A DNA stretch of 64,000 nt from Oopsacas minuta (GCA_024704765.1 JAKMXF010000111.1:698619-762618), one strand, 5' to 3'. Counted from the stretch's first letter, positions 1 through 36,100 are shown. The notes: generated from the sequence alone by a model not told the origin. Translations and numbers: made by a program.

Positions 1-3000
1 TTTTAATATTACAACTGAGTTGTTCTCTTTTAGACACAGAAAATAATTCTGGATACATTCGATAATCCGGAACAAGTAACTTCTGCTTTTGTGACTCAAG
101 TATTTGACAAGATAATCAAGGTAAGCCCAATACAAAATATGATAATGGTAATCAGTGAAACCTCCACAAACGGAGCCTGTGGAAAAGGGGAACTTAGAAA
201 TCCGCTCAATTTTTCACTCCTTGGCACGGAGTAAAAGTAGCGCGGATTCCTAGTCCCATACAAATGAACCTCCACAAAAGGCGGAATTTAGCAGAAACCG
301 GGTAGCATTTTCGGCGTCCTGACACTCAGTTTATGGCGGTTACACTGTATATTCAGATCTTATTTTCTATTAGACGCATGTAAAAGATGAGTTGAGGGAC
401 ATCAATAAAGAGACAGACATAGACGAGTATCTGTCAAAGCTGTCAGATCTATATGACAAGTATGTAACATTTATTCTATTATTTGTTATGTATTATTTTG
501 ATAACATTGTATAGGACAACATTATTGGGTCGAAAGTTAGTTGATTATGAAATGATTCAGGATACACCTACTGCCACCAAACAAATAAAGAACCTCTTCT
601 ATGACTATCTACATAATTATGCTGAGTGAGTTCATGAACTTTTTTATTTTCCCATGTTTTTAAACTCATAATTTTAGAGAGGAAATCCATAATTTCGGTA
701 CAAAAGGAAGGACTGAATTAGAAGAGTATTATAAGGTTCTATTTGACACTACAGGAATGCAGAAGAAAGCTACAACAACTTCAAGCGGAGGCTACAAACC
801 TAGGAGGGAGACAATAAGAAATGTTACTGTAGATGTCCTATTCGTTTCTCAGGATTTTATAACTAACATTCTCAGTGCAACTAAACAGTGTATCAACCGT
901 TGTAAAGTTGTACGTAGCAGATTTTTTATTATTTGTCTATCTCAATATCATCTAATTTATTCTTGTTACTAGCTGTGTAATCCTAATGAACTCTCTGTTA
1001 CTGTCAAGTTAATATACAAGACAATGATGGAGCTGATATGTAGAGATCATCTGGACTATGCAGTTAAACTCGCACTCACAGGCAAGTTCATACATCAATA
1101 AATATGAATATGAAATAATGAATTGTTGGATAACCGGAATGTCTGGATCCATTTCTCTACCTATCTATTATTCTATTATCAATTGACTTAATCTATGAAT
1201 GAGTCGCAACAAACATAACAAACAAGTTGCTTCTAGAAAGAGTACTCCTGCTCAGCTTCCTAATATTTGTATATTTCAGTTGGGATCGTCTGATACAGGA
1301 GAGGAACTCCCTAAACATGGTGTATATCTTTATTCACACTCCTCCTCTCCCTATCTTCTCTGTGTCTCACTGGATAAGCTACTAGTGATCGACAGTTCTG
1401 ACAGAGAGCTGTATGCAGAGTATAAAGCAACTGAGGACATGTTTAGCTCAGTAATAGAATATACAGGTCTCATATTGGTAGGCAGTGTACTAGGTTATGT
1501 ATATTCAATCAGTTTAGCAAACTTCCATTGCAGTCCTCCCATACATGTCCATGATGGTTCTGTTATTCAATTGATAGCTCATCCAGTAGAGAATACATGG
1601 ATTGCTAGTATTGGCGGAGACGGGTATCTGAAGCTGATAAATATGCAAGATGATATGAGCAAGTTCAAACGAGTACACGACAGGTTCTTACTTCAGCTAA
1701 AGATTTCGGGGGAAGCTAGTGCTATGTCATTCTCTCCTCAAGGAGATTGGTTGTTGACCAGCTACGATAATGGAATAAGAGCATGGGAGATTGAGAGGAA
1801 GAACTTGAGCAAGGATAAGCGGTTCAGAAAGACAGCTCCTCCTTTCTCTGTTCAGTTATATGGTAGTAAATTCCATCAGTCTACAGTGGAGCGTATCGTG
1901 TTTATAAGAGATGACGTAGTAGCTTCTAAAGACAAGATAGAACAGTGTGTCCTATTGTGGAAGTTTGACATTGATGCAGACGTATGGCGTATGAGTAGTA
2001 ACACGATTGAACACGAACCTACACTGCTATACACAGTAGCTTGTGACTTCTCTGCTTTCGATTATATACGCGAAACCAGCAAACTGGTAGTAGCCATGGA
2101 TAAGGGGGTTGTTAGGATATTACCCTTGTTGTTTGATGAAGAAATGGAGAGTGATAGTGACGTCACTGTTTCCGTAAGGTTTGGGACTACACAAGATCTC
2201 CCTGGGCCAGACCAACCAATAACTGGGATATATTGCCTTCACAATAAGATACTGGTGGGACTAGCTAATAATTGTGTTGTTGTTTATGCTAATTAGTTAT
2301 TATTCGTCATAGTATTCTATAGATTTTGTGTAATAGTGCTAGCTTAGAGATTTATCAAATACACTCGTAACTATTTGTAATATTTGTAGTTATGAAGAGC
2401 AGTGAAAGCAAGTCACCTCCTAATGGGATATTCTTCAGTCTAATCAATATGATAAATCTAAACTATCATTTGGTAGAGAATCAGTTCAGGGAAACAATGC
2501 TTCCCTGTCTGAGGTAATATAATATAATTATTCGTATATTTGTCTTCTAATCTTCATTCAATTCTGAAGCCCCTCTTAGCCTTATAAACTGGTCATCCTT
2601 CAGACTGTATCTACATTCTGCTTTAGTTGGAGTGCTAACTATTAATTTAAATGATTTCCCATCCTCTCTCTCTATCGTAATTTTGTGTGGTATCCACTTA
2701 CTAACCACAGAGTAGTATATCTCTGAGCATATGAATATAGGAATATTCTTATTGTCAGTCTGAATGCTCCAGAAGTTGGTAGCATCTCTTAGTAGAGCTA
2801 ATATCTTAGCTAGTTTGATGACGTCAGTATCCCCTCCTTCCCCTCTAGCATACACCTCTAAACAATCCAACAGTACTAAGCTCGGCTTTAAGTTGCTCTC
2901 ATGTACAGCAGCTAGTAGCTGTATCAGATCACTCTGTGTAGCTGGGTATTTGAGCTGTATGAATTTCAAATGTTCATGTTTAGGTGTACTGTCTGGAGGA

Positions 3001-4375
3001 AGAGCTGGCAATTTAGTGGGAGCTGTCGGACTTATAAACAGTACTTCGCTCTTGTTTTGACAAGTAAGGATTGCTTGATGGAATAATATAGAAGTTTTTC
3101 CTGTAGAGGAGTGTCCTTGTATTAAGAAGTAAGGATCTTTAGTCTGAGCTGCTAATGCCAGTAGATCTAGATAGTTATCTTCTGAGTTACTCGCCATCTG
3201 TTAATACTAATTTTAAATACAGAATATAATAATACAATATACAGTGGAACCCCCGTTAATACGAACACCATGGACGGTCAAATATTGTTCGTCTTATCCG
3301 GAGTTCATATTAACCGAAGTAATGCCAATTGAATAACCATGTATGTATCTGATTTTAAGTAAACATTTGTTCGTTTGATCGGGGAATTCGTATTACCGCG
3401 TTCGTATTAAGGAGAGTCACTTTAGTTTAGTTTAATTAATCTTATTTTGTAAAGTACATCAGCAGAGTACACAGCCTGTGTGAAGATCAAGAACGAAATT
3501 ACTGCTAGTTTAGATCGTAACATTGAAGAGGGATTAGACAAGTAAGTCAAACTTTCTAATAAATACTATTCTATAATCATAACTCGTTTAACTCATTAGG
3601 TATCTGAACTATACAATTGGCCATTTGAAGATGATCCTAACCACTGAACAGAAACGTTCAGATTTTAAGGTTGAGGATTCTGACGCAGATCTAAATTTAA
3701 GTGTTACATCGGTATGTATAATTCTTGTACTTTTCTAATTTATACTGATACTCCATATTCTTGTCACACACAGGCTTGTCAAAAGTCTACAGTATTCTTA
3801 CACTCTATAATGGTTTATATTAAAGAGAATTTGGATGGTCCTAACAAGAAAAATGTACTCACAGAACTTGGACTGAGATTCCACCGCTTACTAATGGAGC
3901 ATTTAGTATTATTTGTATACACTTACACTGGTATGTAACTTGTAAATATGTAGCTGGTATAACCTTATCTCCAACCCTTGATATAGGTGCTATTAAGGTA
4001 TTATGCGACGTCACAGAGTACAGAAAAGTGATTGAAATATTCGAGGTTTGTTATATTCTTAATACAAGCCTTCCTTATAGATTGTATAACAGTTGAACAT
4101 CACTGGTTGTAGATTCCAACTCTTCTCAACATCATGGAAGCTACTCACATGCTGTGTAACTTGTTGATAGTTCCACCAGAAAATCTCAAACAAGTTGCTA
4201 CTGATGCGCAATTGGTAATGCACCAGTGTTGATTTAAGAAATAACAATCTCACATAATTTATTGGTAACATTCTTTTACTAGACAACAGGAACCCTGGAC
4301 AAGAATGTGGTGATGTCATTCATACAACTACGTCATGACTTCAAAACGAAAATAGGAAAGAATTTCGTCTTATAA
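1..4375 (+). CDS. EXOC5: Exocyst complex component 5 (Sec10), multi-exon, 5' end outside the window; host of two nested genes
   Basis: Exons joined by eye give ...CRDHLDYAVKLALT|VMKSSESKSPP...ETMLPCL|STSAEYTACVKIK...GLDK|YLNYTIGHLKMILTTEQKRSDFK...|...LDGPNKKNVLTELGLRFHRLLMEHL...|CDVTEYRK...|MLCNLLIVPPENLKQV...|LDKNVVMSFIQLRHDF, matching the Sec10 C-terminus. Large introns at 1082-2389 and 2514-3454; stop at 4373-4375. Confidence 0.9.
153..347. mobile_element. MITE family A (Tc1/mariner-pogo-like termini), intronic
   Basis: Termini CAGTGAAACCTCC ... GGCGGTTACACTG followed by TA; internal blocks shared with 38796-38864 and 61199-61338. Confidence 0.7.
1199..2296 (+). CDS. WD40 beta-propeller protein, LRWD1/ORCA-like WD region only; intronless; nested same-strand in an EXOC5 intron
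   Basis: 365-aa ORF. VERIVFIRDDVVASKD...VLLWKF and terminal LANNCVVVY resemble LRWD1 motifs recalled as VDGLAFVNEDIVASKG...ICLWSW and LTDSNIVAIW. Confidence 0.6.
   Translation: MSRNKHNKQVASRKSTPAQLPNICIFQLGSSDTGEELPKHGVYLYSHSSSPYLLCVSLDKLLVIDSSDRELYAEYKATEDMFSSVIEYTGLILVGSVLGYVYSISLANFHCSPPIHVHDGSVIQLIAHPVENTWIASIGGDGYLKLINMQDDMSKFKRVHDRFLLQLKISGEASAMSFSPQGDWLLTSYDNGIRAWEIERKNLSKDKRFRKTAPPFSVQLYGSKFHQSTVERIVFIRDDVVASKDKIEQCVLLWKFDIDADVWRMSSNTIEHEPTLLYTVACDFSAFDYIRETSKLVVAMDKGVVRILPLLFDEEMESDSDVTVSVRFGTTQDLPGPDQPITGIYCLHNKILVGLANNCVVVYAN
2547..3197 (-). CDS. SWSAP1: ATPase SWSAP1 (RAD51/RadA paralog of the Shu complex); nested antisense in an EXOC5 intron
   Basis: Walker A GHSSTGKT, VLFISP, LKYP, Walker B LVLLDCLEVY; 216 aa. 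Confidence 0.8.
   Translation of the reverse strand: MASNSEDNYLDLLALAAQTKDPYFLIQGHSSTGKTSILFHQAILTCQNKSEVLFISPTAPTKLPALPPDSTPKHEHLKFIQLKYPATQSDLIQLLAAVHESNLKPSLVLLDCLEVYARGEGGDTDVIKLAKILALLRDATNFWSIQTDNKNIPIFICSEIYYSVVSKWIPHKITIEREDGKSFKLIVSTPTKAECRYSLKDDQFIRLRGASELNED
3242..3423. mobile_element. MITE family B (Tigger/pogo-like TIR)
   Basis: TA-CAGTGGAACCCCGTTAATACGAAC ... GTTCGTATTAAGGAGAGTCACTT-TA; related copy at 41019-41185. Confidence 0.7.
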
Positions 4376-4532
4376 GACAATCTAGCTATTTTATGACTAT
4401 GAGAGATAGTGTATAACAATAATTATCTGTATATGTTGTATTCTACAAGATAATTATGAAATTACAACATAAAGTGCCCCGAGAGTTACCTAGGTAAACT
4501 GTATGTTGGTATTATGACGTCATGTTTTTAGA

Positions 4533-5906
4533 ATGGCAAGTGGATTTAGTGGTGTTCTTAAACTGACAGATTTAGATGACTTTATAACTCCATCACAACA
4601 GTGTGTTAAGCCAGTACAGCCTCCTACAAGACTACCCGGCTCTACCAATTCTACCAAACTAGAAAAGGCTAAAATATCTCTAAATGATTGTCTAGCTTGT
4701 AGTGGTTGTGTCACGAGTGCAGAGAGCGTTTTGATTGGATCACAGAGTTTTGAAGAGTTCTTAAAATGTATAGAATCAGCTGATCAATCTAGCCCTGCTG
4801 ATTCTAAGATATTTATTCTGACTTTATCTCCTCAGAGCGTTGCTTCAATGGCAGCTGTCAGTAATCTGTCAATACAAGAAGCTACTCTTAAAGTCAGTGG
4901 AATGTTCAGGAGTTTTGGCGTTTCATTCGTATTTGATTCTAGTTTTGCTCGTTCATTTAGTTTAATTGAAACCGCGAATGAATTTATTTCACGATTCAAG
5001 TTGGGAGAGACACATCTTCCTCTCTTGGCTTCATCCTGTCCCGGTTGGATCTGTTACGCTGAGAAAACACACGGTAACACGATATTACCATTTATATCTA
5101 CAGCAAAATCTCCTCAACAAGTAGCTGGCTCTTTAATTAAGTCATACATTGCTTCTATGCTAGGTACATCAGCTGATAATATTTATCATCTGTCATTAAT
5201 GCCATGTTATGATAAGAAACTTGAAGCCTCCAGACAGCAGTTCTACTCTGATATATACAGAACCAGGGATGTAGATATGGTACTAACCTCTGTGGAAATA
5301 GGAGCTCTGTTAGAGGCGAGAGCTCTTAAATTAACGGACTATCCTTCTGTAGGATTGAACAGTTTCTCTGATTTGAAGTTAGAACCTGTAGCTGGGTTAA
5401 TAGGACATAAGGGAGGCGGAGCTGGTGGGTATCTGGAGCATACTCTAGTCAGAGCGGCTAAACAGCTGTTTAATATTGAAGTCAATGAGATTAGTTATAC
5501 AACTCTTAAGAATAAGGACATAGGAGAAGTAACAGTTGAGAAAGATGGCCAGACGGTATTGACGTTTGCATATGCTTATGGATTCAGGAATATTCAGAAT
5601 GTAGTTCAGAAAATTAAGCGAAAAAAGTGTCCTTATCATTTTGTGGAGGTGATGGCGTGTCCAAGTGGTTGTCTTAACGGAGGGGGACAAATGAGGGCCT
5701 CAGAAATGGAACACAAAGATCATTTAAATGACGTCATTAAATTATACGACACTATCCCATTGACAGATCCCTTCTTAGACCTGTCTGTTAAGAGATTATA
5801 TAGTGAATGGTTGGAAGGGGAGAATTCTGATAAAGTTGTGCAATACTTACACACCAGCTACAAGGCTATTGATAAAACTATATCACTGCTTAGTATCAAA
5901 TGGTAG
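4533..5906 (+). CDS. CIAO3: Cytosolic Fe-S assembly component 3 (NARFL/IOP1, Fe-hydrogenase-like), intronless
   Basis: LTDLDDFITPSQQC, ISLNDCLACSGCVTSAE, SSCPGWICYAEK, MPCYDKKLEASR, EVMACPSGCLNGGGQ. Confidence 0.95.
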   Translation: MASGFSGVLKLTDLDDFITPSQQCVKPVQPPTRLPGSTNSTKLEKAKISLNDCLACSGCVTSAESVLIGSQSFEEFLKCIESADQSSPADSKIFILTLSPQSVASMAAVSNLSIQEATLKVSGMFRSFGVSFVFDSSFARSFSLIETANEFISRFKLGETHLPLLASSCPGWICYAEKTHGNTILPFISTAKSPQQVAGSLIKSYIASMLGTSADNIYHLSLMPCYDKKLEASRQQFYSDIYRTRDVDMVLTSVEIGALLEARALKLTDYPSVGLNSFSDLKLEPVAGLIGHKGGGAGGYLEHTLVRAAKQLFNIEVNEISYTTLKNKDIGEVTVEKDGQTVLTFAYAYGFRNIQNVVQKIKRKKCPYHFVEVMACPSGCLNGGGQMRASEMEHKDHLNDVIKLYDTIPLTDPFLDLSVKRLYSEWLEGENSDKVVQYLHTSYKAIDKTISLLSIKW

Positions 5907-5998
5907 TTTTGGATTTGTATTTGTTTTAGTATATTTCTATCTTACATACTTGACTCTTGAAATTTGTGTTTGTATGTACATTTGTTTACAGCAATAAT

Positions 5999-16491
<10,493 letters not shown>

Positions 16492-27149: not shown

Positions 27150-30100
27150 ATGAGTGATAATAGAGATTTCTGTCGTTCTTCTCATGCCTCTACGCTAGGT
27201 GTTAACCTAGACGCAATAGGAGATGTGGAGCAGTACGATCAGCTGTCTGGAGATTTCCTGGGCCTATTGCAGAGTCATGATCATTACGATGTTATTTTCA
27301 AAGTTGAGGGACAGCTATTTCATGCACATAGAGTATTGCTAGCAGCTAGATGTAAATATTTTGATGCTATGTTGTATGGAAGTATGAAAGAGGCACAGGA
27401 TGCTGAGAAAGGAGAACCGATAGAAATACCGGACACTACAGCATCTGCTTTTCAAGTTTTGTTGGAATATATTTACACAGGAAAAGTCCTGCTCAGTGAC
27501 TTGTCAGAACAAGTAAGTAGCAGTTATTCATTTCATTATACGTAGACTTATCACTATCTATTAATGATATTTCTCCTGAAGCTAAATTTACCAAAATTTA
27601 TATAGAAGCATGTACGTGTATTGCATGAATGCTATTTTTTTACGATAACATCTTACACTACAAACAAATTCTATAATTAAGATTAAAATGTGAATAAATA
27701 AGTGTAAAATGGAATATAAAATGTAACTAAAATATTTCTGCTATCATGCAGCGAGCACTTCCTCCTCCTAGAGTCTCTATAGTAGTAAGATCTGATGAAA
27801 GGATTGTTCCATGTTTGCTTAGTCTCTGACACATGTCACTTGTCAATGCATTCCTAGCTTGTTCTGACATCACTATGAACAGCTGATTAGAACTATTCCT
27901 AACTTGCAAACAATTACCTAGCATCCTACTACACTGATCTATACTAATCTCTATAACTTCCTTCCTATCTTGTTCTAAACTCCTTAATACAAAAGTACGT
28001 TCTGATTTAGAGGAGATACTCTCCAAACAAATAATAGCAAACTCGGCTCCTACCGCCATCAATACATCTGTGTGGTAGATAGGAATGTCATTGTATTTAG
28101 CTGAGAATGTTATCGGTTGAAACCCCATTTCTGTACAAAACTTTTTAACAAGAGTTATATGTGTCCGGGGAGATATATTAGCATATGCTTTCCTGTTAAC
28201 TTTATCCAGCACGACACTACCTGTTCCTTCTAAGTACATTTCTTCTTCTTCATAAATACTGAAATCTATCAATTTCTTGCCTGGCATTTTGAAATCTTGT
28301 ACTATATCAATTCTCCTCTCCTTGCGTCTGTTCTCATGCCTTTGAGGGTATAACACTACCCCCTCTGGATGAAATGACACCCAATTACTAGGAAACACTG
28401 CATCTGGTTTAACAGGATCAGGGGTGTCAGTACGAACATGTACATTAATTCTGTGAGATCTGAGCAATGATACGAATGTATCGAATTCTCTGAGTGCTTG
28501 TGCATGTGCTTGTGTTGATTGCTTCTTAGGTTCCTGGAATGTATTGTCTATCATTGTCTGTTGGTTACAGGAGAAGTTAGCAGGCCGTATCATGAGGATA
28601 GAATCAGTTACTTGAGTGTGTAGAGCAGGTCCTCCCATTGTGTTATACTGTGATATCAGTTGATGATTAGAGAGATAAGATTTGCATACTCTCAAGGTGT
28701 TGATTACCCCCCTCATATACATCGTATGGTTTGTTTGTTTGTTTGTTTATCTGTCATTATTTGCGCTTTATACTCCTTTAACTGACAGTAAATATGTGAC
28801 TATATTATACTAATTAGTCTTTGCGGTTATACACTTCCAAAAAGAGGTCTATATATTTATGGAATGCCTTATCATACTGTGAGAGCTATTACTACTAGCT
28901 ACTTGCTATAATTATTGCTCACTGAGAAGCCACACTGTACTGTTCCATTAGTTTGCTGATTACATAACACATAATACTCACTTAGTACCAATTAAATGTA
29001 CCAAAATTTGTCCCATACGGTATAGCACTTAGCAATTTGGTAAGTTCTGCTGTATAAAAGTGAATAATACCTCACAGTAATGGCATTCAATGAATTTGTT
29101 ATTATCGTACCTGAATTTGTTATCTGAGAAAGAACTATAAAAGCGCAAATAATGACAGATAAACAAACAAACAAACAAACAAACAAACCATACGATGTAT
29201 ATGAGGGGGGTAATCAACACCTTGAGAGTATGCAAATCTTATCTCTCTAATCATCAACTGATATCACAGTATAACACAATGGGAGGACCTGCTCTACACA
29301 CTCAAGTAACTGATTCTATCCTCATGATACGGCCTGCTAACTTCTCCTGTAACCAACAGACAATGATAGACAATACATTCCAGGAACCTAAGAAGCAATC
29401 AACACAAGCACATGCACAAGCACTCAGAGAATTCGATACATTCGTATCATTGCTCAGATCTCACAGAATTAATGTACATGTTCGTACTGACACCCCTGAT
29501 CCTGTTAAACCAGATGCAGTGTTTCCTAGTAATTGGGTGTCATTTCATCCAGAGGGGGTAGTGTTATACCCTCAAAGGCATGAGAACAGACGCAAGGAGA
29601 GGAGAATTGATATAGTACAAGATTTCAAAATGCCAGGCAAGAAATTGATAGATTTCAGTATTTATGAAGAAGAAGAAATGTACTTAGAAGGAACAGGTAG
29701 TGTCGTGCTGGATAAAGTTAACAGGAAAGCATATGCTAATATATCTCCCCGGACACATATAACTCTTGTTAAAAAGTTCTGTACAGAAATGAAGTTCGAG
29801 CCAATAGTATTCTCAGCTAAATACAATGACATTCCTATCTACCACACAGACGTGCTAATGTCAGTAGGGGCGGAGTTTGCTATTATTTGTTTGGAGAGTA
29901 TCTCCTCTAAATCAGAACGTACTTTTGTATTAAGGAGTTTAGAACAAGATAGGAAGGAAGTTATAGAGATTAGTATAGATCAGTGTAGTAGGATGCTAGG
30001 TAATTGTTTGCAAGTTAGGAATAGTTCTAATCAGCTGTTCATAGTGATGTCAGAACAAGCTAGGAATGCATTGACAAGTGACATGTGTCAGAGACTAAGC

Positions 30101-33100
30101 AAACATGGAACAATCCTTTCATCAGATCTTACTACTATAGAGACTCTAGGAGGAGGAAGTGCTCGCTGCATGATAGCAGAAATATTTTAGTTATTCCATT
30201 TTCACTTATTTATTCTACTGTATTTTCATAATTTTTGTCGTAATGTAAAGTTAAGACACTCGATTTCCAACCTTCTACTCTCCAGATGCCTTTAATCAAC
30301 CTTATATATTGTTGCAGTAAAATATTTTCGTGTTTTCTCTCAATACCTTAATTTAATTTTATGCTGGATATGCTGGTCACTTGGGGTGTATGCAAAGGGA
30401 AATCGTTCCTATAGCAAGGAGCTATACAGTAGTACCTCCCATATGCATACGGAGTGTTCGGGAAGCATTTGCTGCAAGACTCTGCACCCCACTTCCGCAT
30501 TCGAATTTATGACTATTGTCGTTCATTATAATTATCAGTAATTACTCAAAAAAATAGAAATAGTAAGAAATAAATGTAAAATGGAATACAGAATGTAACT
30601 AATATATTTCTGCTATCATGCAGCGAGCACTTCCTCCTCCTAGAGTCTCTATAGTAGTAAGATCTGATGAAAGGATTGTTCCATGTTTGCTTAGTCTCTG
30701 ACACATGTCACTTGTCAATGCATTCCTAGCTTGTTCTGACATCACTATGAACAGCTGATTAGAACTATTCCTAACTTGCAAACAATTACCTAGCATCCTA
30801 CTACACTGATCTATACTAATCTCTATAACTTCCTTCCTATCTTGTTCTAAACTCCTTAATACAAAAGTACGTTCTGATTTAGAGGAGATACTCTCCAAAC
30901 AAATAATAGCAAACTCCGCCCCTACTGACATTAGCACGTTTGTGTGGTAGATAGGAATGTCATTGTATTTAGCTGAGAATACTATTGGCTCGAACTTCAA
31001 TTCTGTACAGAACTTTTTAACAAGAGTTATATGTGTCCGGGGAGATATATTAGCATATGCTTTCCTGTTAACTCTGTCTAATACTAAACTGCCAGTTCCT
31101 TCTAAGTACATTTCTTCTTCTTCTAACTTACTGAAATCTGTATATTTTTTCCCTTTCCCTATGAGCTCTTTTAATACATCAATTCTCCTCTCGTAACGTC
31201 TATTCTCGGCCCTCATAGGATATAACACTACCCCCTCTGGATGAAATGACACCCAATTATTAGGAAACACTGCATCTGGCTTAACAGGTTCAGGTGTATC
31301 CTTACGAACATATACGTTTATTCTATGAGATCTTAGCAATGATACTAAGGTATTGAATTCTCTGAGTGCTTGTGCCTGTGGATTTATTGGTGAATTTTTA
31401 GAGACCTGGAATGTATTGTCTGTCTTCGTCATATCGTTACAGTGGAAATTAACAGGTTGTATCATGAGGAGAGTATCAGTTACTTGAGTGTATAGATTAT
31501 CTTTCTTAGTAGTGTATCGTGCTGTTATTTGATGATTGAAGAAGATATGAGAAGAGTATACTCTCGAGGTGTTGATAACACCTCTCATAACCATCTTTCT
31601 ATTTGTTTGTTGTCTGTTTACTTTATTATCCTTCTATTGTGCATTATTTCTAATAAATGTATACATTCAACCACCGTTATATCGAAGCTCAGGGACAGCT
31701 ATAATTTCTTCGATAAAACCGATATATTTATGCACTTTTGACGGTTTGGCCCATATTTGTACAATAATCAGACTTCGATATATCCGTGTTTGATACAACG
31801 GAAGTTGACTGTATTAATGATAACATATTACACGAATATAGAATCACACATTCACTGATACTATTAGTTATACCAATCACTTACTCTAGGTGGTACTAGA
31901 AGTACTCGAACTAGTGAATAAGTATAACTTCACTTCTCTACTACACCCTCTGTCCTGTTACCTCAAGGCTACTCTCACTGTAACTAATGTATGTCACATA
32001 TTCGAGATAGCTAACGTGTACTCACTACACGAATTACTCACTACATCATGTACCCTAATGGACCTGAATGCTAAGGAAGTACTCAACACAGAGGGCTTCT
32101 TCTCTCTGTCAGAGCCCTCCCTCACCGAACTACTTTCCAGAGATTCATTCTACGCAGATGAAGTAGATATATTCAATGGAGTCATAGAATGGTTACAATT
32201 CAATGGTAAAACAAAAGAGAGTTCTCAACGTGTGTTAAGAACAGTTAGACTGAATCTACTAGACATGAAGGAGCTCCTCTCCCGTGTTAGACCCTCTGGA
32301 TTCTTCTGTCCTGACACCATACTAGATGCTATTGAAGCTAAAGTCAATGTGGATCCTCTTACACTGAATAGAAGAGGAATTCTGAGTAAGTACACTGCTA
32401 GTGACCTCGGTTAAATATTTATTGTAAACTCTCTAGTACCAGATGATAATGTAGCTAGACTACAGCACGCAGCTGAGGTTACAGAGGGTCAGCAAACACA
32501 ATGTCTGCTGGATGGAAACTCAGAGAACTATAATTGGGATCATGGGTTCACTCTACACAGAATTGATCCAGAAAAACCAGAGGGCATCACTATTAAGCTC
32601 GGGAGACCACATATAATCAATACAATACGTATGTTACTGTTTGATAGAGACTATCGTTCTTACTCATACGTCATACAAGTAAGTTATTATATCATATAAT
32701 AGTTATTGTTGGTATTATACGTAAATCGGTGTAATAGGTATCTCTTGACCAAGAAAAGTGGCTTAAAGTGGTAGACTACAGTAGTTATTATTGTCGCTCT
32801 TGGCAAGAGTTACATTTTCAAGCTAGAGTAGTTCAGTGAGTTAACAGTATACAATAATTCTTGAACAGTTGCTACATAGCATTATATTAGATATATTCGA
32901 GTTATTGGTACAATGAACACACACAACAGATCATTCCATCTGGTTGCATTCGAGTGTCTATACTCCACCAGACCTTTTATACTATCTCCACTGTTCAATG
33001 GACTAATAGGTGTGTAACAAATACAGTAAACTTCTGTTATATCGAAGCTCAAGGAACCGCGATAATTACTTCGATAAAACCGGTGTAATTTACATTACTT

Positions 33101-36100
33101 TGACTGTTTGAGACTATATTTGTATAATTTCATGCTTCGATATAAGCGAGTATTTCCATATATCCGTGTTCGATATAACAAGAGTTTACTGTTTACTGAA
33201 ATGACATACAGTCTAGTTGATACAAATTTATCCTATTAGTACCAGCAGAGAACGTAGCATCTGTTGCAGCTAGTGCTACAGTAATTGAAGGAGTGAGTAG
33301 ATCACGTAACGCACTACTTAACGGTAACATTAGAGATTATGACTGGGACTCAGGATATACTTGTCATCAGTTAGGGAGTGGTTCTATCGTTATACAGTTA
33401 GCTCAGCCTTATGTAATCGAGTCAATGAGGTAAGAATTGTGTAACTATAGATTCATATAATTATTACACCTATAATGACACACACGTAGTTAGGAAGATT
33501 CAATTATTACCACATAGCTATAATAATTATAACATTTGCAGACTACTCTTGTATGCAGCATCCATAGAGGTGATTAGCATCTTTAGTTCATCATGTGAGA
33601 GCTCCAATTGTTCAGTATTTCTCCCCTCATCTCCCTCCATATGCAATGTCAGGTTCAAAAGAGGTTGACGCAAACTCCCCATCGTATCGCTAGCCATTAC
33701 TACGTTAACAGACCAGTCAATATCCTTCAATACATTACCTACTCCAGTAATGCTATCTGTCTCACTGAGTAGATATTTGTGTAATTCCTCCTTTCTTGTT
33801 TCAAAGCATTCTGCTATAGCTGTCTGTATTTCTATGGTAGGCTTGCGATCTTCTGGGAGATCTGCTAGGTATTTGAGTACGATTGATTTCGCAAAGCCAT
33901 CAGCTTGACAAGCTTCTTTTAGCTTATTGAACTCTAGTTTGAAACTGCTCCACTCTTTAGATGTAAATATGCTCCTGTAATGCTCGAATTCAGGAGGTTT
34001 ACTCCATACTAACTCATTAATGAATAAGTGTACCAGTTTAAGAACTTCTTCAATTGGAGACAGTTTATTAAGCACTTCCATTATTCACTAATTGATCGAT
34101 AATAATATTAATTAAGTATATTTAGACTACAATAAGTATATAATAAAGTGGCCCTCTTGTCTATCAAGTGGTTATATAATCGGAATATTAATAATCTTAT
34201 GTTCAATACCCATTATAGTGCTATCTTAATTTTAAAACTATTTATCTCGTTCATATATTTAAGCCATTAGCTAATCTTATCAAATTGTGTTCTAAGTAGC
34301 CCAATAATTTCCATTGAAAACGCAAGGATGTTGTTACTATTTTCTAGACGGAGACGAGTACTGCTATAAACTTTTAAGAAAGATAACTATAAAGATATAT
34401 TCACTCTTAGAAGGAAGCCTCGAATACCCGTGCTACCTTATCTATACTCATTTATTCTTTCAAATATACTTTATTAATGAAGTTAAAATAACCTCAAACT
34501 CATTACAATTTCCTCTTATCTTAGATCTTTTGTATAACAACAGGCGCCTAACTATCAAATAAATTATGAATACATTTCCTAAACTGTTCTGTCTTCTCGA
34601 AACAAAACGGTATAAAGTATATAGGATTCTTATGGAGCATTAATCTTCTCTATTTGGTAATTATTCAACCAATTACATAACATAACTACATCATCTACTA
34701 CTAATTACCATACTAATAGCTATCAAACAGATTGACAGTTCTCCACTAACCAGTGATACAGTTTTAACCTGTTTTGTTCCTTCATAAGAGCTCCCAGTCT
34801 CTCCAGACATGTCTTATGGTATTCATTCAGCCATGCAATCTCCTCTCCTGTCAATAGATGGGTATTTATCAGTTTACGCTGAATAGGTACCAAAGTGATA
34901 GGGTCAAAAGTAACGAATTTCCTATCTTGGAATGTATATAGTGTTTGCTTTGGGACAACTAACTGCAAAGATTCTATTCTAATCCCGAATGATCCATCCT
35001 CGTAGAATCCAGGTTCGTTAGAGAGTATCATTCCGGGAGATAGTCCTCCATCTTCTCTCATTCTCGTACCAATACCGCAAGGACCCTCGTGTACATTTAA
35101 GAACATACCTACCCCATGACCTGTCCCATGCAAATAGTCTAATCCCACCTGCCAGAGAGGCTGTCTAGCTAATGTATCCAATCTCTCTCCTCCTACATTA
35201 TCTGGGAATACTATTCTGGCTAGACTGATGTGTCCTTTCAGGACAAGCGTGAACATCTCAATCTCCCTATAAATAACCATGGATTATACATTTAGTTAAT
35301 ATTACTCATATACATCTTACTTCTCACTGGGCTGTCCTAGGTGTACAGTCCTTGTAATATCCGTGGTCCCGTCTGTGTACTGAGCCCCTGAGTCCACTAG
35401 ATACAATTCCTTGTCAGTGATAGCTCTATCTGTCTCTGGAGTACATCTGTAGTGTATGATAGCTCCGTGTGGTCCTGATCCTGAAATAGTCTCAAAAGAG
35501 AGACTGACAAAATGAGCCTGTTCCTTCCTGAACTGTTCTAATTTATCCGCTCCACTGATTTCTGTTACTTTCTCTCCTCTCTTTACTGACTCTTCCAACC
35601 ACCGCACATACTCACAAACAGCTATTGCATCTCTCAAGTGGGATCTACGCATACAATCTATCTCAACTTCGTTTTTAATAGCTTTCATTCTCTGCACACA
35701 ATCCGGCAGTATGACAGTCTTCTCTTCAGGAATACACTTATAGAGTCCATAGGATATATCTGAAGATATCCATACCTTAGTGATAGCAGGATCTGTTGAT
35801 AACTCTCTCAGCTTTTCTTCAGCTTGTGAGTAAGGCAATACTATAATCTTATTATCCGCACAGCTAAGGTTAAGATGCTGTTCTATATCAGGGACGAATC
35901 TAAACGAGAATAAGGATAGCAACTAGCTAGCAATTACAATATAACCTACCGTGAGTGTTCTACAAAGAAGAATACTCTTTGTCTAGTCAGGAACAGATAC
36001 GAGAAAAATACTGGATTGAATGGAATATCACTTCCTCGTAGATTCAATGTCCAAGCAATACTATCAAGAGCACTGAGTATCTTCAGTTGACATTGTTTCT

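Follow-up and report, generated by a model that had tools for sequence, protein, structure and literature searches.

What are three uninterrupted genes of a bacterial enzyme family doing inside an intron of an animal gene, how did they get there and what could their products catalyse? The question is raised by a locus of the glass sponge Oopsacas minuta (GCA_024704765.1, JAKMXF010000111.1:698619-762618), which we analysed as one strand of 64,000 nucleotides (nt); this whole stretch is called the window, and positions are counted within it. In the first intron of a BTBD9-like gene we observed three intronless open reading frames (ORFs), copies A, B and C, each started by ATG, free of stop codons and exactly 331 codons (331 amino acids, aa) long (Table 1). 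We favour, with moderate confidence, the account that these are three paralogues, of two types, of an old sponge gene of the CtlX family, a family of putative citrullinases. For the descriptive part of this account taken alone (array anatomy, family of type 1, synteny, selection, expression and residue changes) our confidence is high.

Family assignment

All three copies matched Pfam PF19420 over their full length (E ~1e-90). The NCBIfam equivalog NF046062 (CtlX; cutoff 334 bits) was scanned with A and C, and both exceeded the cutoff with 359-366 bits over profile positions 2-299 of 299; B is 98% identical to A. The motifs DAVFP(S/N)NW, LEGTGS, YHT(D/N)V and GGGSARC are present in each copy, with key codons checked base by base, and the catalytic residues Cys325 and His217, which are invariant, are intact in A, B and C.

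Bacterial fitness data were the basis on which CtlX was described as a putative citrullinase, with the authors stating that biochemistry was still needed; its hallmark is Asn in place of both guanidinium-binding Asp residues, FTRD becoming FPNN and HLD becoming HTN (PMC9007349). Copy C has this signature (N112, N113 and N219), whereas A and B have FPSN and HTD; we refer to C as type 1 and to A and B as type 2. Type 1 belongs to the CtlX family. In comparison with bacterial CtlX (NF046062; Price et al. 2022, PMC9007349) the sponge proteins are of equal length save for an N-terminal extension of ~30 aa and keep the Cys (in GGGSARC) and the His. They differ in that their genes reside in an animal host, in three small deletions relative to Bacteroidota common to all glass-sponge copies and, for A and B, in FPSN/HTD together with M127Q and R174K. 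No ocd, aruFG or ADI (arginine deiminase) neighbours were present at the sponge loci, whose surroundings consist, as is normal for a eukaryote, of unrelated animal genes. At one bacterial locus (L089:6493-8960) a 503-aa ADI-family gene overlaps the CtlX start by 4 nt, beside a gene with a Glu-synthase domain, in an operon-like arrangement; such an ADI-ctlX pair fits a route from arginine via citrulline to ornithine.

AlphaFold2 predicted a pentein fold (predicted local distance difference test, pLDDT, 77.9; below 50 for residues 1-32). Foldseek placed ArgZ/AgrE arginine dihydrolase and DDAH-1 first (template modelling, TM, score 0.6-0.78, 14-19% identity), with further matches to GATM, SxtG and agmatine deiminase; the Foldseek probability was 1.00 for ArgZ, DDAH-1, GATM and agmatine deiminase. 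ArgZ reaches ornithine through an intermediate resembling citrulline; ureido hydrolysis as proposed for CtlX is thus within the capacity of a pentein. The cyanobacterial ArgZ/AgrE structures (PDB 6juy, 6jv1 and 6lrg), by their entry titles the arginine dihydrolase of the ornithine-ammonia cycle, were the best structural match (TM 0.61-0.78), with the pentein fold and a Cys nucleophile in common. However, identity is only 16-19% with no match at sequence level, and ArgZ starts from arginine and bears a large extra C-terminal domain. Animal DDAH-1 (PDB 3i2e and 2jai) and GATM (1jdw) have the same superfamily fold; they show no detectable sequence similarity to the sponge proteins, have Asp where the sponge pocket has Asn and represent a different subfamily.

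It could be argued that the enzymes are DDAH-like or ADI-like guanidino hydrolases and not citrulline hydrolases, given that PF19420 is titled ‘eukaryotic DDAH’ (DDAH_eukar), that DDAH-1 is among the best structural matches and that type 2 again has Asp in the H-x-D motif, as penteins acting on guanidino groups typically do. We consider this unlikely. Searches of solved structures in PDB with a single sequence (phmmer) and with a 14-sequence profile gave no significant DDAH, ADI or GATM chain, the best profile matches being unrelated proteins with E of at least 0.33. Moreover, Asn occupies the two Asp positions that bind guanidinium in type 1 and in almost all of the family, as would suit a neutral ureido group, and the bacterial family tracks citrulline use (PMC9007349) and stands behind an ADI-family gene in the operon-like pair mentioned above. 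As judged from profiles and predicted fold, then, A, B and C are bacterial-type pentein hydrolases of the CtlX family that have only the pentein fold in common with DDAH, GATM and ADI. A reading of the window made earlier from its sequence alone (the sequence-only reading) had likewise named a CtlX-like family and set the proteins apart from animal DDAH and GATM.

Location in the animal genome and distribution

Run X4 of O. minuta behaves as complementary DNA (cDNA), with TruSeq adapters and spliced joints. Its contigs join position 27512 to 31890 and position 32385 to 32437, both across GT..AG, and the frame of the host gene is unbroken across both joints; thus A, B and C lie inside host intron 1. 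Three intronless 331-aa ORFs with the above motifs in the first intron of an animal gene were what the sequence-only reading had described; the coordinates proved exact and the cDNA splices across the array. DNA-like contigs from runs X1-X3 (Nextera adapters) span all unique junctions without mismatch (27222-27753, 28762-29149, 30164-30633 and 31230-31807) and also cover the private 94-nt patch of copy A without mismatch, so that the triplication is not an obvious assembly artefact; support from X1-X3 and X4 comes from a single sample, possibly the one that was assembled.

A word search returned seven proteins at 56-68% identity, encoded on contigs of 36 kb-2.5 Mb (all but one >0.3 Mb), followed by proteins at no more than 52% identity, mostly from Bacteroidota. 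At the loci L001-L005, from five other glass-sponge genomes, one single-exon copy each is located antisense between the BTB and BACK exons of the host, among the same neighbours as in the window: Tectonin, Nup35, cofilin, COMMD8, M24 peptidase and SNAPC1. Three copies were found only in O. minuta. The sequence-only reading had spoken of a guanidino/ureido-modifying ‘system’; a system of several parts has to be given up, as A, B and C are paralogues of two types and three copies are confined to this species.

Bacterial contamination or an assembly artefact can practically be dismissed. The best named non-sponge matches are Bacteroidota proteins at 44-50% identity, and the supporting runs are from one sample; still, no bacterial protein is more than 52% identical, the genes sit in a spliced animal intron on a 1.9-Mb contig, their GC content (0.36-0.37) equals that of the flanks, the position is conserved in five other genomes and all junctions are covered by contigs. 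The statement of the sequence-only reading that contamination was not involved is thus upheld by synteny, by splicing of host mRNA across the array and by the size of the contig. The gene is physically integrated in the animal genome and transcribed, as seen from the spliced intron, the conserved synteny and cDNA contigs in two species.

Homologues were also observed in demosponges: Amphimedon queenslandica LOC105314247 and Geodia barretti GBAR_LOCUS5651, both single-exon and located elsewhere in the genome. In a first tree the rows nearest to the glass sponges were two proteins with N-terminal extensions of ~55 aa, one of them encoded on a eukaryotic contig next to a many-exon MOV10-like helicase gene. 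A search with the latter protein gave a large clade of proteins of 340-395 aa, many on megabase-scale contigs, which included those of Amphimedon and Geodia. The CtlX-like gene is common to Hexactinellida and Demospongiae.

An exhaustive HMMER search produced 3111 clusters at 50% identity (E ≤0.001), with 418 bits for the sponge representative and 296 for the next match. Every cluster with a taxon record in Atlas and, among the matches listed, every named one outside sponges was bacterial; when at least 595 loci from species-representative genomes were ranked by identity, the best 80 were almost all from Bacteroidota.

The gene adds to a known bacterial enzyme family an animal member that had not been described and that is old in sponges. 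A CtlX-like gene is mentioned neither in the text and supplements of the Amphimedon survey of bacterial-type genes (PMC4784904) nor in the texts of PMC13342648, PMC10280926 and PMC10282587. The bacterial-type genes of that survey are likewise single-exon, placed among animal genes, expressed and common to several sponge species (PMC4784904); in comparison with these, the CtlX gene spans two sponge classes and bears a targeting-like extension.

Phylogeny and origin

In an unrooted tree of 130 rows (IQ-TREE, LG+C20 with posterior mean site frequencies, PMSF, quick search) the 10 glass-sponge rows formed one clade (100) and the 34 demosponge-like rows another (99). An approximately unbiased (AU) test on 72 rows (LG+G4) did not reject a single sponge clade (p-AU 0.80), and the constrained tree was 33 log-likelihood (lnL) units above the free-search tree. 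As the gene is common to both sponge classes and a single clade is not rejected, any transfer must have been ancient. Most economically, the gene originated once, long ago, in the sponge stem (at least in that of Silicea) and was then inherited vertically: the ancestor common to glass sponges and demosponges would have acquired it or already possessed it, and in the line leading to glass sponges it would have come to lie antisense in intron 1 of the BTBD9-like gene and been kept there under purifying selection. A recent transfer from Bacteroidota was also considered, since the sponge-like matches of the first word search were followed by proteins of Flavobacteriia and Sphingobacteriia at about 50% identity, and is ruled out by the large demosponge clade and by the trees, which do not place sponges inside Bacteroidota.

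Two separate transfers, with glass sponges and demosponges each taking a CtlX gene from bacteria, appear more doubtful still than the guanidino-hydrolase alternative above. The free quick trees do not make the two sponge clades sisters, and the locations differ (the BTBD9 intron in glass sponges; beside the MOV10-like helicase or elsewhere in demosponges). Nevertheless, the likelihood of the tree with one sponge clade is the higher one, as stated, and both clades have presequence-like N-terminal extensions that bacteria lack.

A horizontal origin of the sponge gene is favoured, though not proven; we infer it from the huge size of the bacterial family and from the lack of other named eukaryotes. 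Three findings tell against such an origin or leave it less sharply defined. In both the 130-row and the 72-row tree the bacterial backbone is not resolved, and the sponge clades fall in a polytomy with unlabelled bacterial sequences. As sponges are not nested in Bacteroidota, no bacterial donor can be named. Finally, Amphimedon and Geodia were the only other eukaryotes named among the matches listed (three lists of 120), most entries of which are nameless.

With an unrooted tree and such a backbone, the topology allows a root between sponges and bacteria, sponges being on one side of a branch; one could speculate therefore that an ancient eukaryotic or opisthokont gene was retained in sponges only and lost elsewhere, without horizontal transfer. 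Two orphan transcript-like proteins with long N-terminal regions, P0189 and P0253, could be taken in support. We see this scenario as improbable, about to the same degree as guanidino hydrolysis: it needs many independent losses, the family is very large and bacterial wherever a cluster or match outside sponges has a taxon label or name, and the sponge proteins exceed the cutoff of a bacterial equivalog. Furthermore, the two demosponges were the only named eukaryotes among the 360 matches listed, with no other EukProt or NCBI eukaryote at the scores at which Amphimedon appears. The orphan proteins themselves (P0189, 429 aa; P0253, 356 aa) are CtlX-like, were found on Logan contigs of 1.6-1.7 kb and could be from further eukaryotic holders of the gene; no close relative of P0189 was found.

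Of the horizontal acquisition proposed in the sequence-only reading, an ancient bacterial-type gene is thus the favoured part, while a local, recent or species-specific acquisition does not agree with a gene common to Hexactinellida and Demospongiae. The phylogeny that it had called for recovered the glass-sponge and demosponge clades and is compatible with one sponge clade, but left the donor without a place.

Copy history and divergence of the pocket

Values of dN/dS (nonsynonymous to synonymous substitution rates; NG86) between orthologues were 0.13 (L001-L002), 0.23 (L003-L004) and ~0.18-0.21 (window against L001 or L002, dS ~1.1-1.2), which indicates purifying selection. Between type 1 and type 2, in the unconverted 5′ core, we obtained dS of 0.34, dN of 0.175 and dN/dS of 0.52.

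The copies have not diverged evenly along their length. In the coding sequence (CDS), A and B are identical over nt 1-584 and 679-996, with all 17 differences confined to nt 585-678; within these 94 nt B is identical to C save for the first base of codon 219, and M199L lies just before them. Between B and C there are 124 differing sites before nt 561 and only three after it (M199L, D219N and F331Y); CDS nt 679-991 are identical in all three copies. A history that would produce this pattern starts with a duplication into type 1 (C) and type 2 (the ancestor of A and B), which took place after the nearest sampled species had branched off. Type 2 would then have been duplicated recently as an inverted pair, and gene conversion would have homogenised the 3′ third of A, B and C.

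The two types differ most conspicuously in the signature residues. FPNN and HTN are present in copy C, in bacteria and in all seven other glass-sponge proteins, one of which, P0005, has an indel there (L002:8001-8915; the motif reads FP-NW, with one Asn of FPNN absent). HTN was observed in 405 of 413 family proteins and HTD in only two; FPNN in 369 of the 374 proteins with a readable FPxx motif, FPSN being found only in A and B. In the 130-row alignment type 2 is derived at four positions that are 92-100% conserved (N112S, M127Q, R174K and N219D); of the positions with more than 70% conservation, type 1 is derived at a single one (F331Y). At codon 219 copy A reads GAT, B reads GAC and C reads AAC, so that B keeps the G that makes Asp inside a tract otherwise like that of C. 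The FPSN/HTD state, to judge by these alignments, is almost unique in the family and survived gene conversion; the lineage-specific split is new.

Should A and B be regarded as drifting, redundant or decaying duplicates, with pocket changes caused by relaxed constraint and no new function? This is the most serious of the alternatives considered, albeit one that we find less probable than a retained function. The rise of dN/dS to 0.52 between types speaks for it, and four near-invariant residues have been replaced, when loss of signature residues commonly inactivates enzymes. Yet the ORFs of A and B are intact, with Cys325, His217, GGGSARC and LEGTGS kept; within the locus, cDNA word depth peaks in the type-2-specific 5′ part; Asp219 is present in both copies by different codons, in B within a tract otherwise converted to the sequence of C; and type 2 itself was recently duplicated. 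In our opinion the pattern fits a retained, altered function of type 2 better than decay, although the sites are few and do not amount to statistical proof. The two points that pull most strongly the other way are that only three differences separate B from C in the converted tract, too few for a selection test, and that the excess of nonsynonymous change in type 2 could itself reflect relaxed constraint.

Under the interpretation of retained function, type 1 would keep the pocket signature and presumably the ancestral activity. In type 2 the catalytic Cys and His are kept but four near-invariant residues, the two signature positions among them, have changed; its substrate, or the head group on which it acts, is probably a different one.

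Expression

The genes are expressed in O. minuta and in the glass sponge Aphrocallistes beatrix, an outcome that answers the call for expression data in the sequence-only reading. In A. beatrix run SRR29297749 (metatranscriptome, PMC11525543) a Logan contig of 1081 nt carries a whole ORF of 338 aa with the extension, plus 33 nt upstream and 31 nt downstream; the encoded protein is identical to that of locus L005. In O. minuta an X4 contig (31359-31651) spans the first ATG of copy C and 57 nt upstream of it. Summed X4 word depth was 300-1470 over host exons, 17-134 over the two spacers (20-134 in the divergent A/B spacer), 450-840 over the C-specific 5′ part and ~2,100-16,100 over the A and B gene bodies (5,900-16,100 in the type-2-specific 5′ part); with the caveat that contig-based depth is a poor measure of expression, which lessens the weight of the comparison, type 2 is apparently more highly expressed than type 1.

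N-terminal extension and possible localisation

The number of residues before the conserved LM(I/V)xP anchor is 41 in the window copies and 40 in A. beatrix, with a median of 46 in demosponge-like proteins and of 8 in 78 bacterial homologues. The first 20 residues contain no acidic and 2-3 basic residues in the window copies, and no acidic and 2-5 (up to 6) basic residues in most sponge proteins; many demosponge leaders look like classical presequences. Presequence character was judged by length, charge and hydrophobic moment, i.e. by heuristics only. The basic, acid-poor extension of ~35 aa noticed in the sequence-only reading is therefore real, and its presequence-like character is strengthened by similar extensions on most demosponge homologues. 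We suggest that the sponge gene gained a basic N-terminal extension, which probably directs the enzyme to mitochondria. GATM, a mitochondrial pentein enzyme of animals, provides a precedent for the compartment.

Some observations do not sit well with mitochondrial import. The N-terminus is short in four of the other seven glass-sponge orthologues. At two loci (L001:9911-10000 and L002:7917-8000) an open frame of 84-90 nt precedes the called Met and is homologous to the window extension (IIRFQYTIT before Met, as against LISQYNT before Met in the window), without an ATG; there the leader may have been lost, may start at a non-AUG codon or may be located in an upstream exon. The public gene call for A/B (P0002, 303 aa) begins at Met29 and bypasses the extension, and Met29 may be the start used in A and B. 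In copy C the first ATG is the sole upstream start codon, and there is no counterpart of the internal Met29. Taken together, it is reasonable to expect mitochondrial targeting, possibly with cytosolic isoforms.

Tandem pairs of CtlX-like genes were seen in demosponge-like genomes (P0333/P0344 on a 569,817-nt ENA contig and P0328/P0334 on a 129,781-nt contig), one member with a basic leader of 45-46 aa and the other without; in such pairs a mitochondrial and a cytosolic form of the enzyme may be encoded by separate paralogues.

Proposed reaction and its significance

For type 1 we infer that the ureido group of citrulline would be hydrolysed by the Cys-His pentein mechanism to ornithine, CO2 and NH3, probably in mitochondria, where ornithine aminotransferase could take ornithine onward. 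No animal enzyme is known to carry out citrulline-to-ornithine hydrolysis. This citrullinase mechanism in mitochondria is put forward tentatively, as a possibility somewhat short of probable. Against it stands the fact that even in bacteria the CtlX reaction was deduced from fitness data and never shown biochemically (PMC9007349).

A still more speculative, and in its entirety unlikely, extension combines several suggestions. In it a bacterial-type pentein hydrolase, probably mitochondrial, would provide sponges with a step from citrulline to ornithine (and ammonia); the pocket of A and B would have been re-tuned, by restoration of the Asp of H-x-D and changes at N112, M127 and R174, for a charged guanidino or other head group; starts at Met1 and Met29 would distribute the enzyme over mitochondria and cytosol; and the enzyme could be one source of the ammonia used by archaeal symbionts. 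Holobionts are known in which archaeal symbionts live on sponge-derived ammonia (PMC11525543).

If the assignment is true, sponges hold an enzyme of arginine/citrulline metabolism that other animals are not known to have, one that two sponge classes have retained over hundreds of millions of years, with a leader resembling an organelle-targeting signal. It would be a clear-cut example, open to testing, of how an early-branching animal lineage domesticated an ancient bacterial-type gene, and would offer a eukaryotic handle on CtlX. The two-type array represents a natural experiment, where two near-invariant pocket residues differ between paralogues that otherwise undergo conversion.

Organisation of the array and of the host gene

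Table 1. Coordinates of the features of the array and of its host gene in the window
Feature	Position	Strand	Remarks
Host exon 1, BTB domain	27150-27512	+	Pfam BTB 3e-18; donor GT at 27513
Host intron 1, holds A, B and C	27513-31889 (4377 nt)	+	GT..AG joint in X4 contig
Copy A, type 2	27727-28722	-	FPSN, S112 28387-28389; HTD, D219 = GAT 28066-28068; Cys325 27748-27750; internal Met29 28636-28638; 359.2 bits
Divergent spacer between A and B start codons	28723-29194 (472 nt)		Ends are inverted repeats including a (CAAA)n run just upstream of each ATG
Copy B, type 2	29195-30190	+	FPSN, S112 29528-29530; HTD, D219 = GAC 29849-29851; Cys325 30167-30169; internal Met29 29279-29281
Homogenised 3′ part	29755-30190 (CDS nt 561-996)	+	B and C differ at 3 of 436 nt
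Patch with all 17 A/B differences	29779-29872 (94 nt; CDS nt 585-678)	+	Sequence comparison
Convergent spacer between B and C stop codons	30191-30598 (408 nt)		~48 nt downstream of stop common to A and C
Copy C, type 1	30599-31594	-	Canonical CtlX-like; FPNN, N112 31259-31261; H217; HTN, N219 30938-30940; Cys325 30620-30622; 365.8 bits
N-terminal extension, residues 1-35, copy A	28618-28722	-	
N-terminal extension, residues 1-35, copy B	29195-29299	+	
N-terminal extension, residues 1-35, copy C	31490-31594	-	
Host exon 2, BACK domain	31890-32385	+	Pfam BACK 3e-20; cDNA joint 32385 to 32437
Host discoidin-like exons	32437-32696, ~32880-33014, ~33221-33430	+	Weak Pfam F5_F8_type_C 0.011; discoidin clusters in Atlas

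Copies A and B form a head-to-head inverted repeat of 1031 nt that is 98% alike, its arms separated by 408 nt, and B and C a tail-to-tail inverted repeat of 901 nt that is 90% alike. The spacer between the A and B start codons is presumed to be a promoter region shared by the two genes. A microsatellite of (CAAA)n type lies directly upstream of the A and B start codons (28723-28769 and 29140-29194), with a degenerate form upstream of C (31595-31640). At six single bases (28792, 28956, 29025, 30266, 30377 and 31490), mostly in spacers, X4 disagrees with both the assembly and X1-X3; these differences could be allelic or come from another individual.

The combination of BTB, BACK and discoidin domains is, we assume, that of BTBD9, and the host is called BTBD9-like from its architecture only (BTB, BACK and weak F5/8-type-C domains). 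An attempt to name the host through Atlas feature searches was abandoned, as it gave only generic BACK and discoidin clusters.

Genes with a single exon number 12,409 of 19,578 in Aphrocallistes vastus and 9,872 of 16,340 in O. minuta, and nesting, which is often conserved, affects ~12% of A. vastus genes (PMC10282587). With most glass-sponge genes single-exon and nesting commonplace (PMC10282587), the property of being intronless is weak evidence; the nesting and the absence of introns are ordinary for glass-sponge genomes. Nested genes described in the A. vastus genome are, like the array, single-exon guests in a host intron at a position conserved between glass sponges (PMC10282587); the O. 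minuta guest differs from them in having been amplified to three copies within the intron and is otherwise not unusual in kind.

The host intron at 32386-32436 is very short (51 nt, GT..AG, seen as a cDNA joint), in keeping with a compact genome. The second discoidin-like repeat ends at ~33430, and the antisense COMMD8 gene (33527-34081) follows 97 nt further on. The last exons of the host may lie past COMMD8, in which case COMMD8 would be a second guest of the same gene (window positions 33221-34081).

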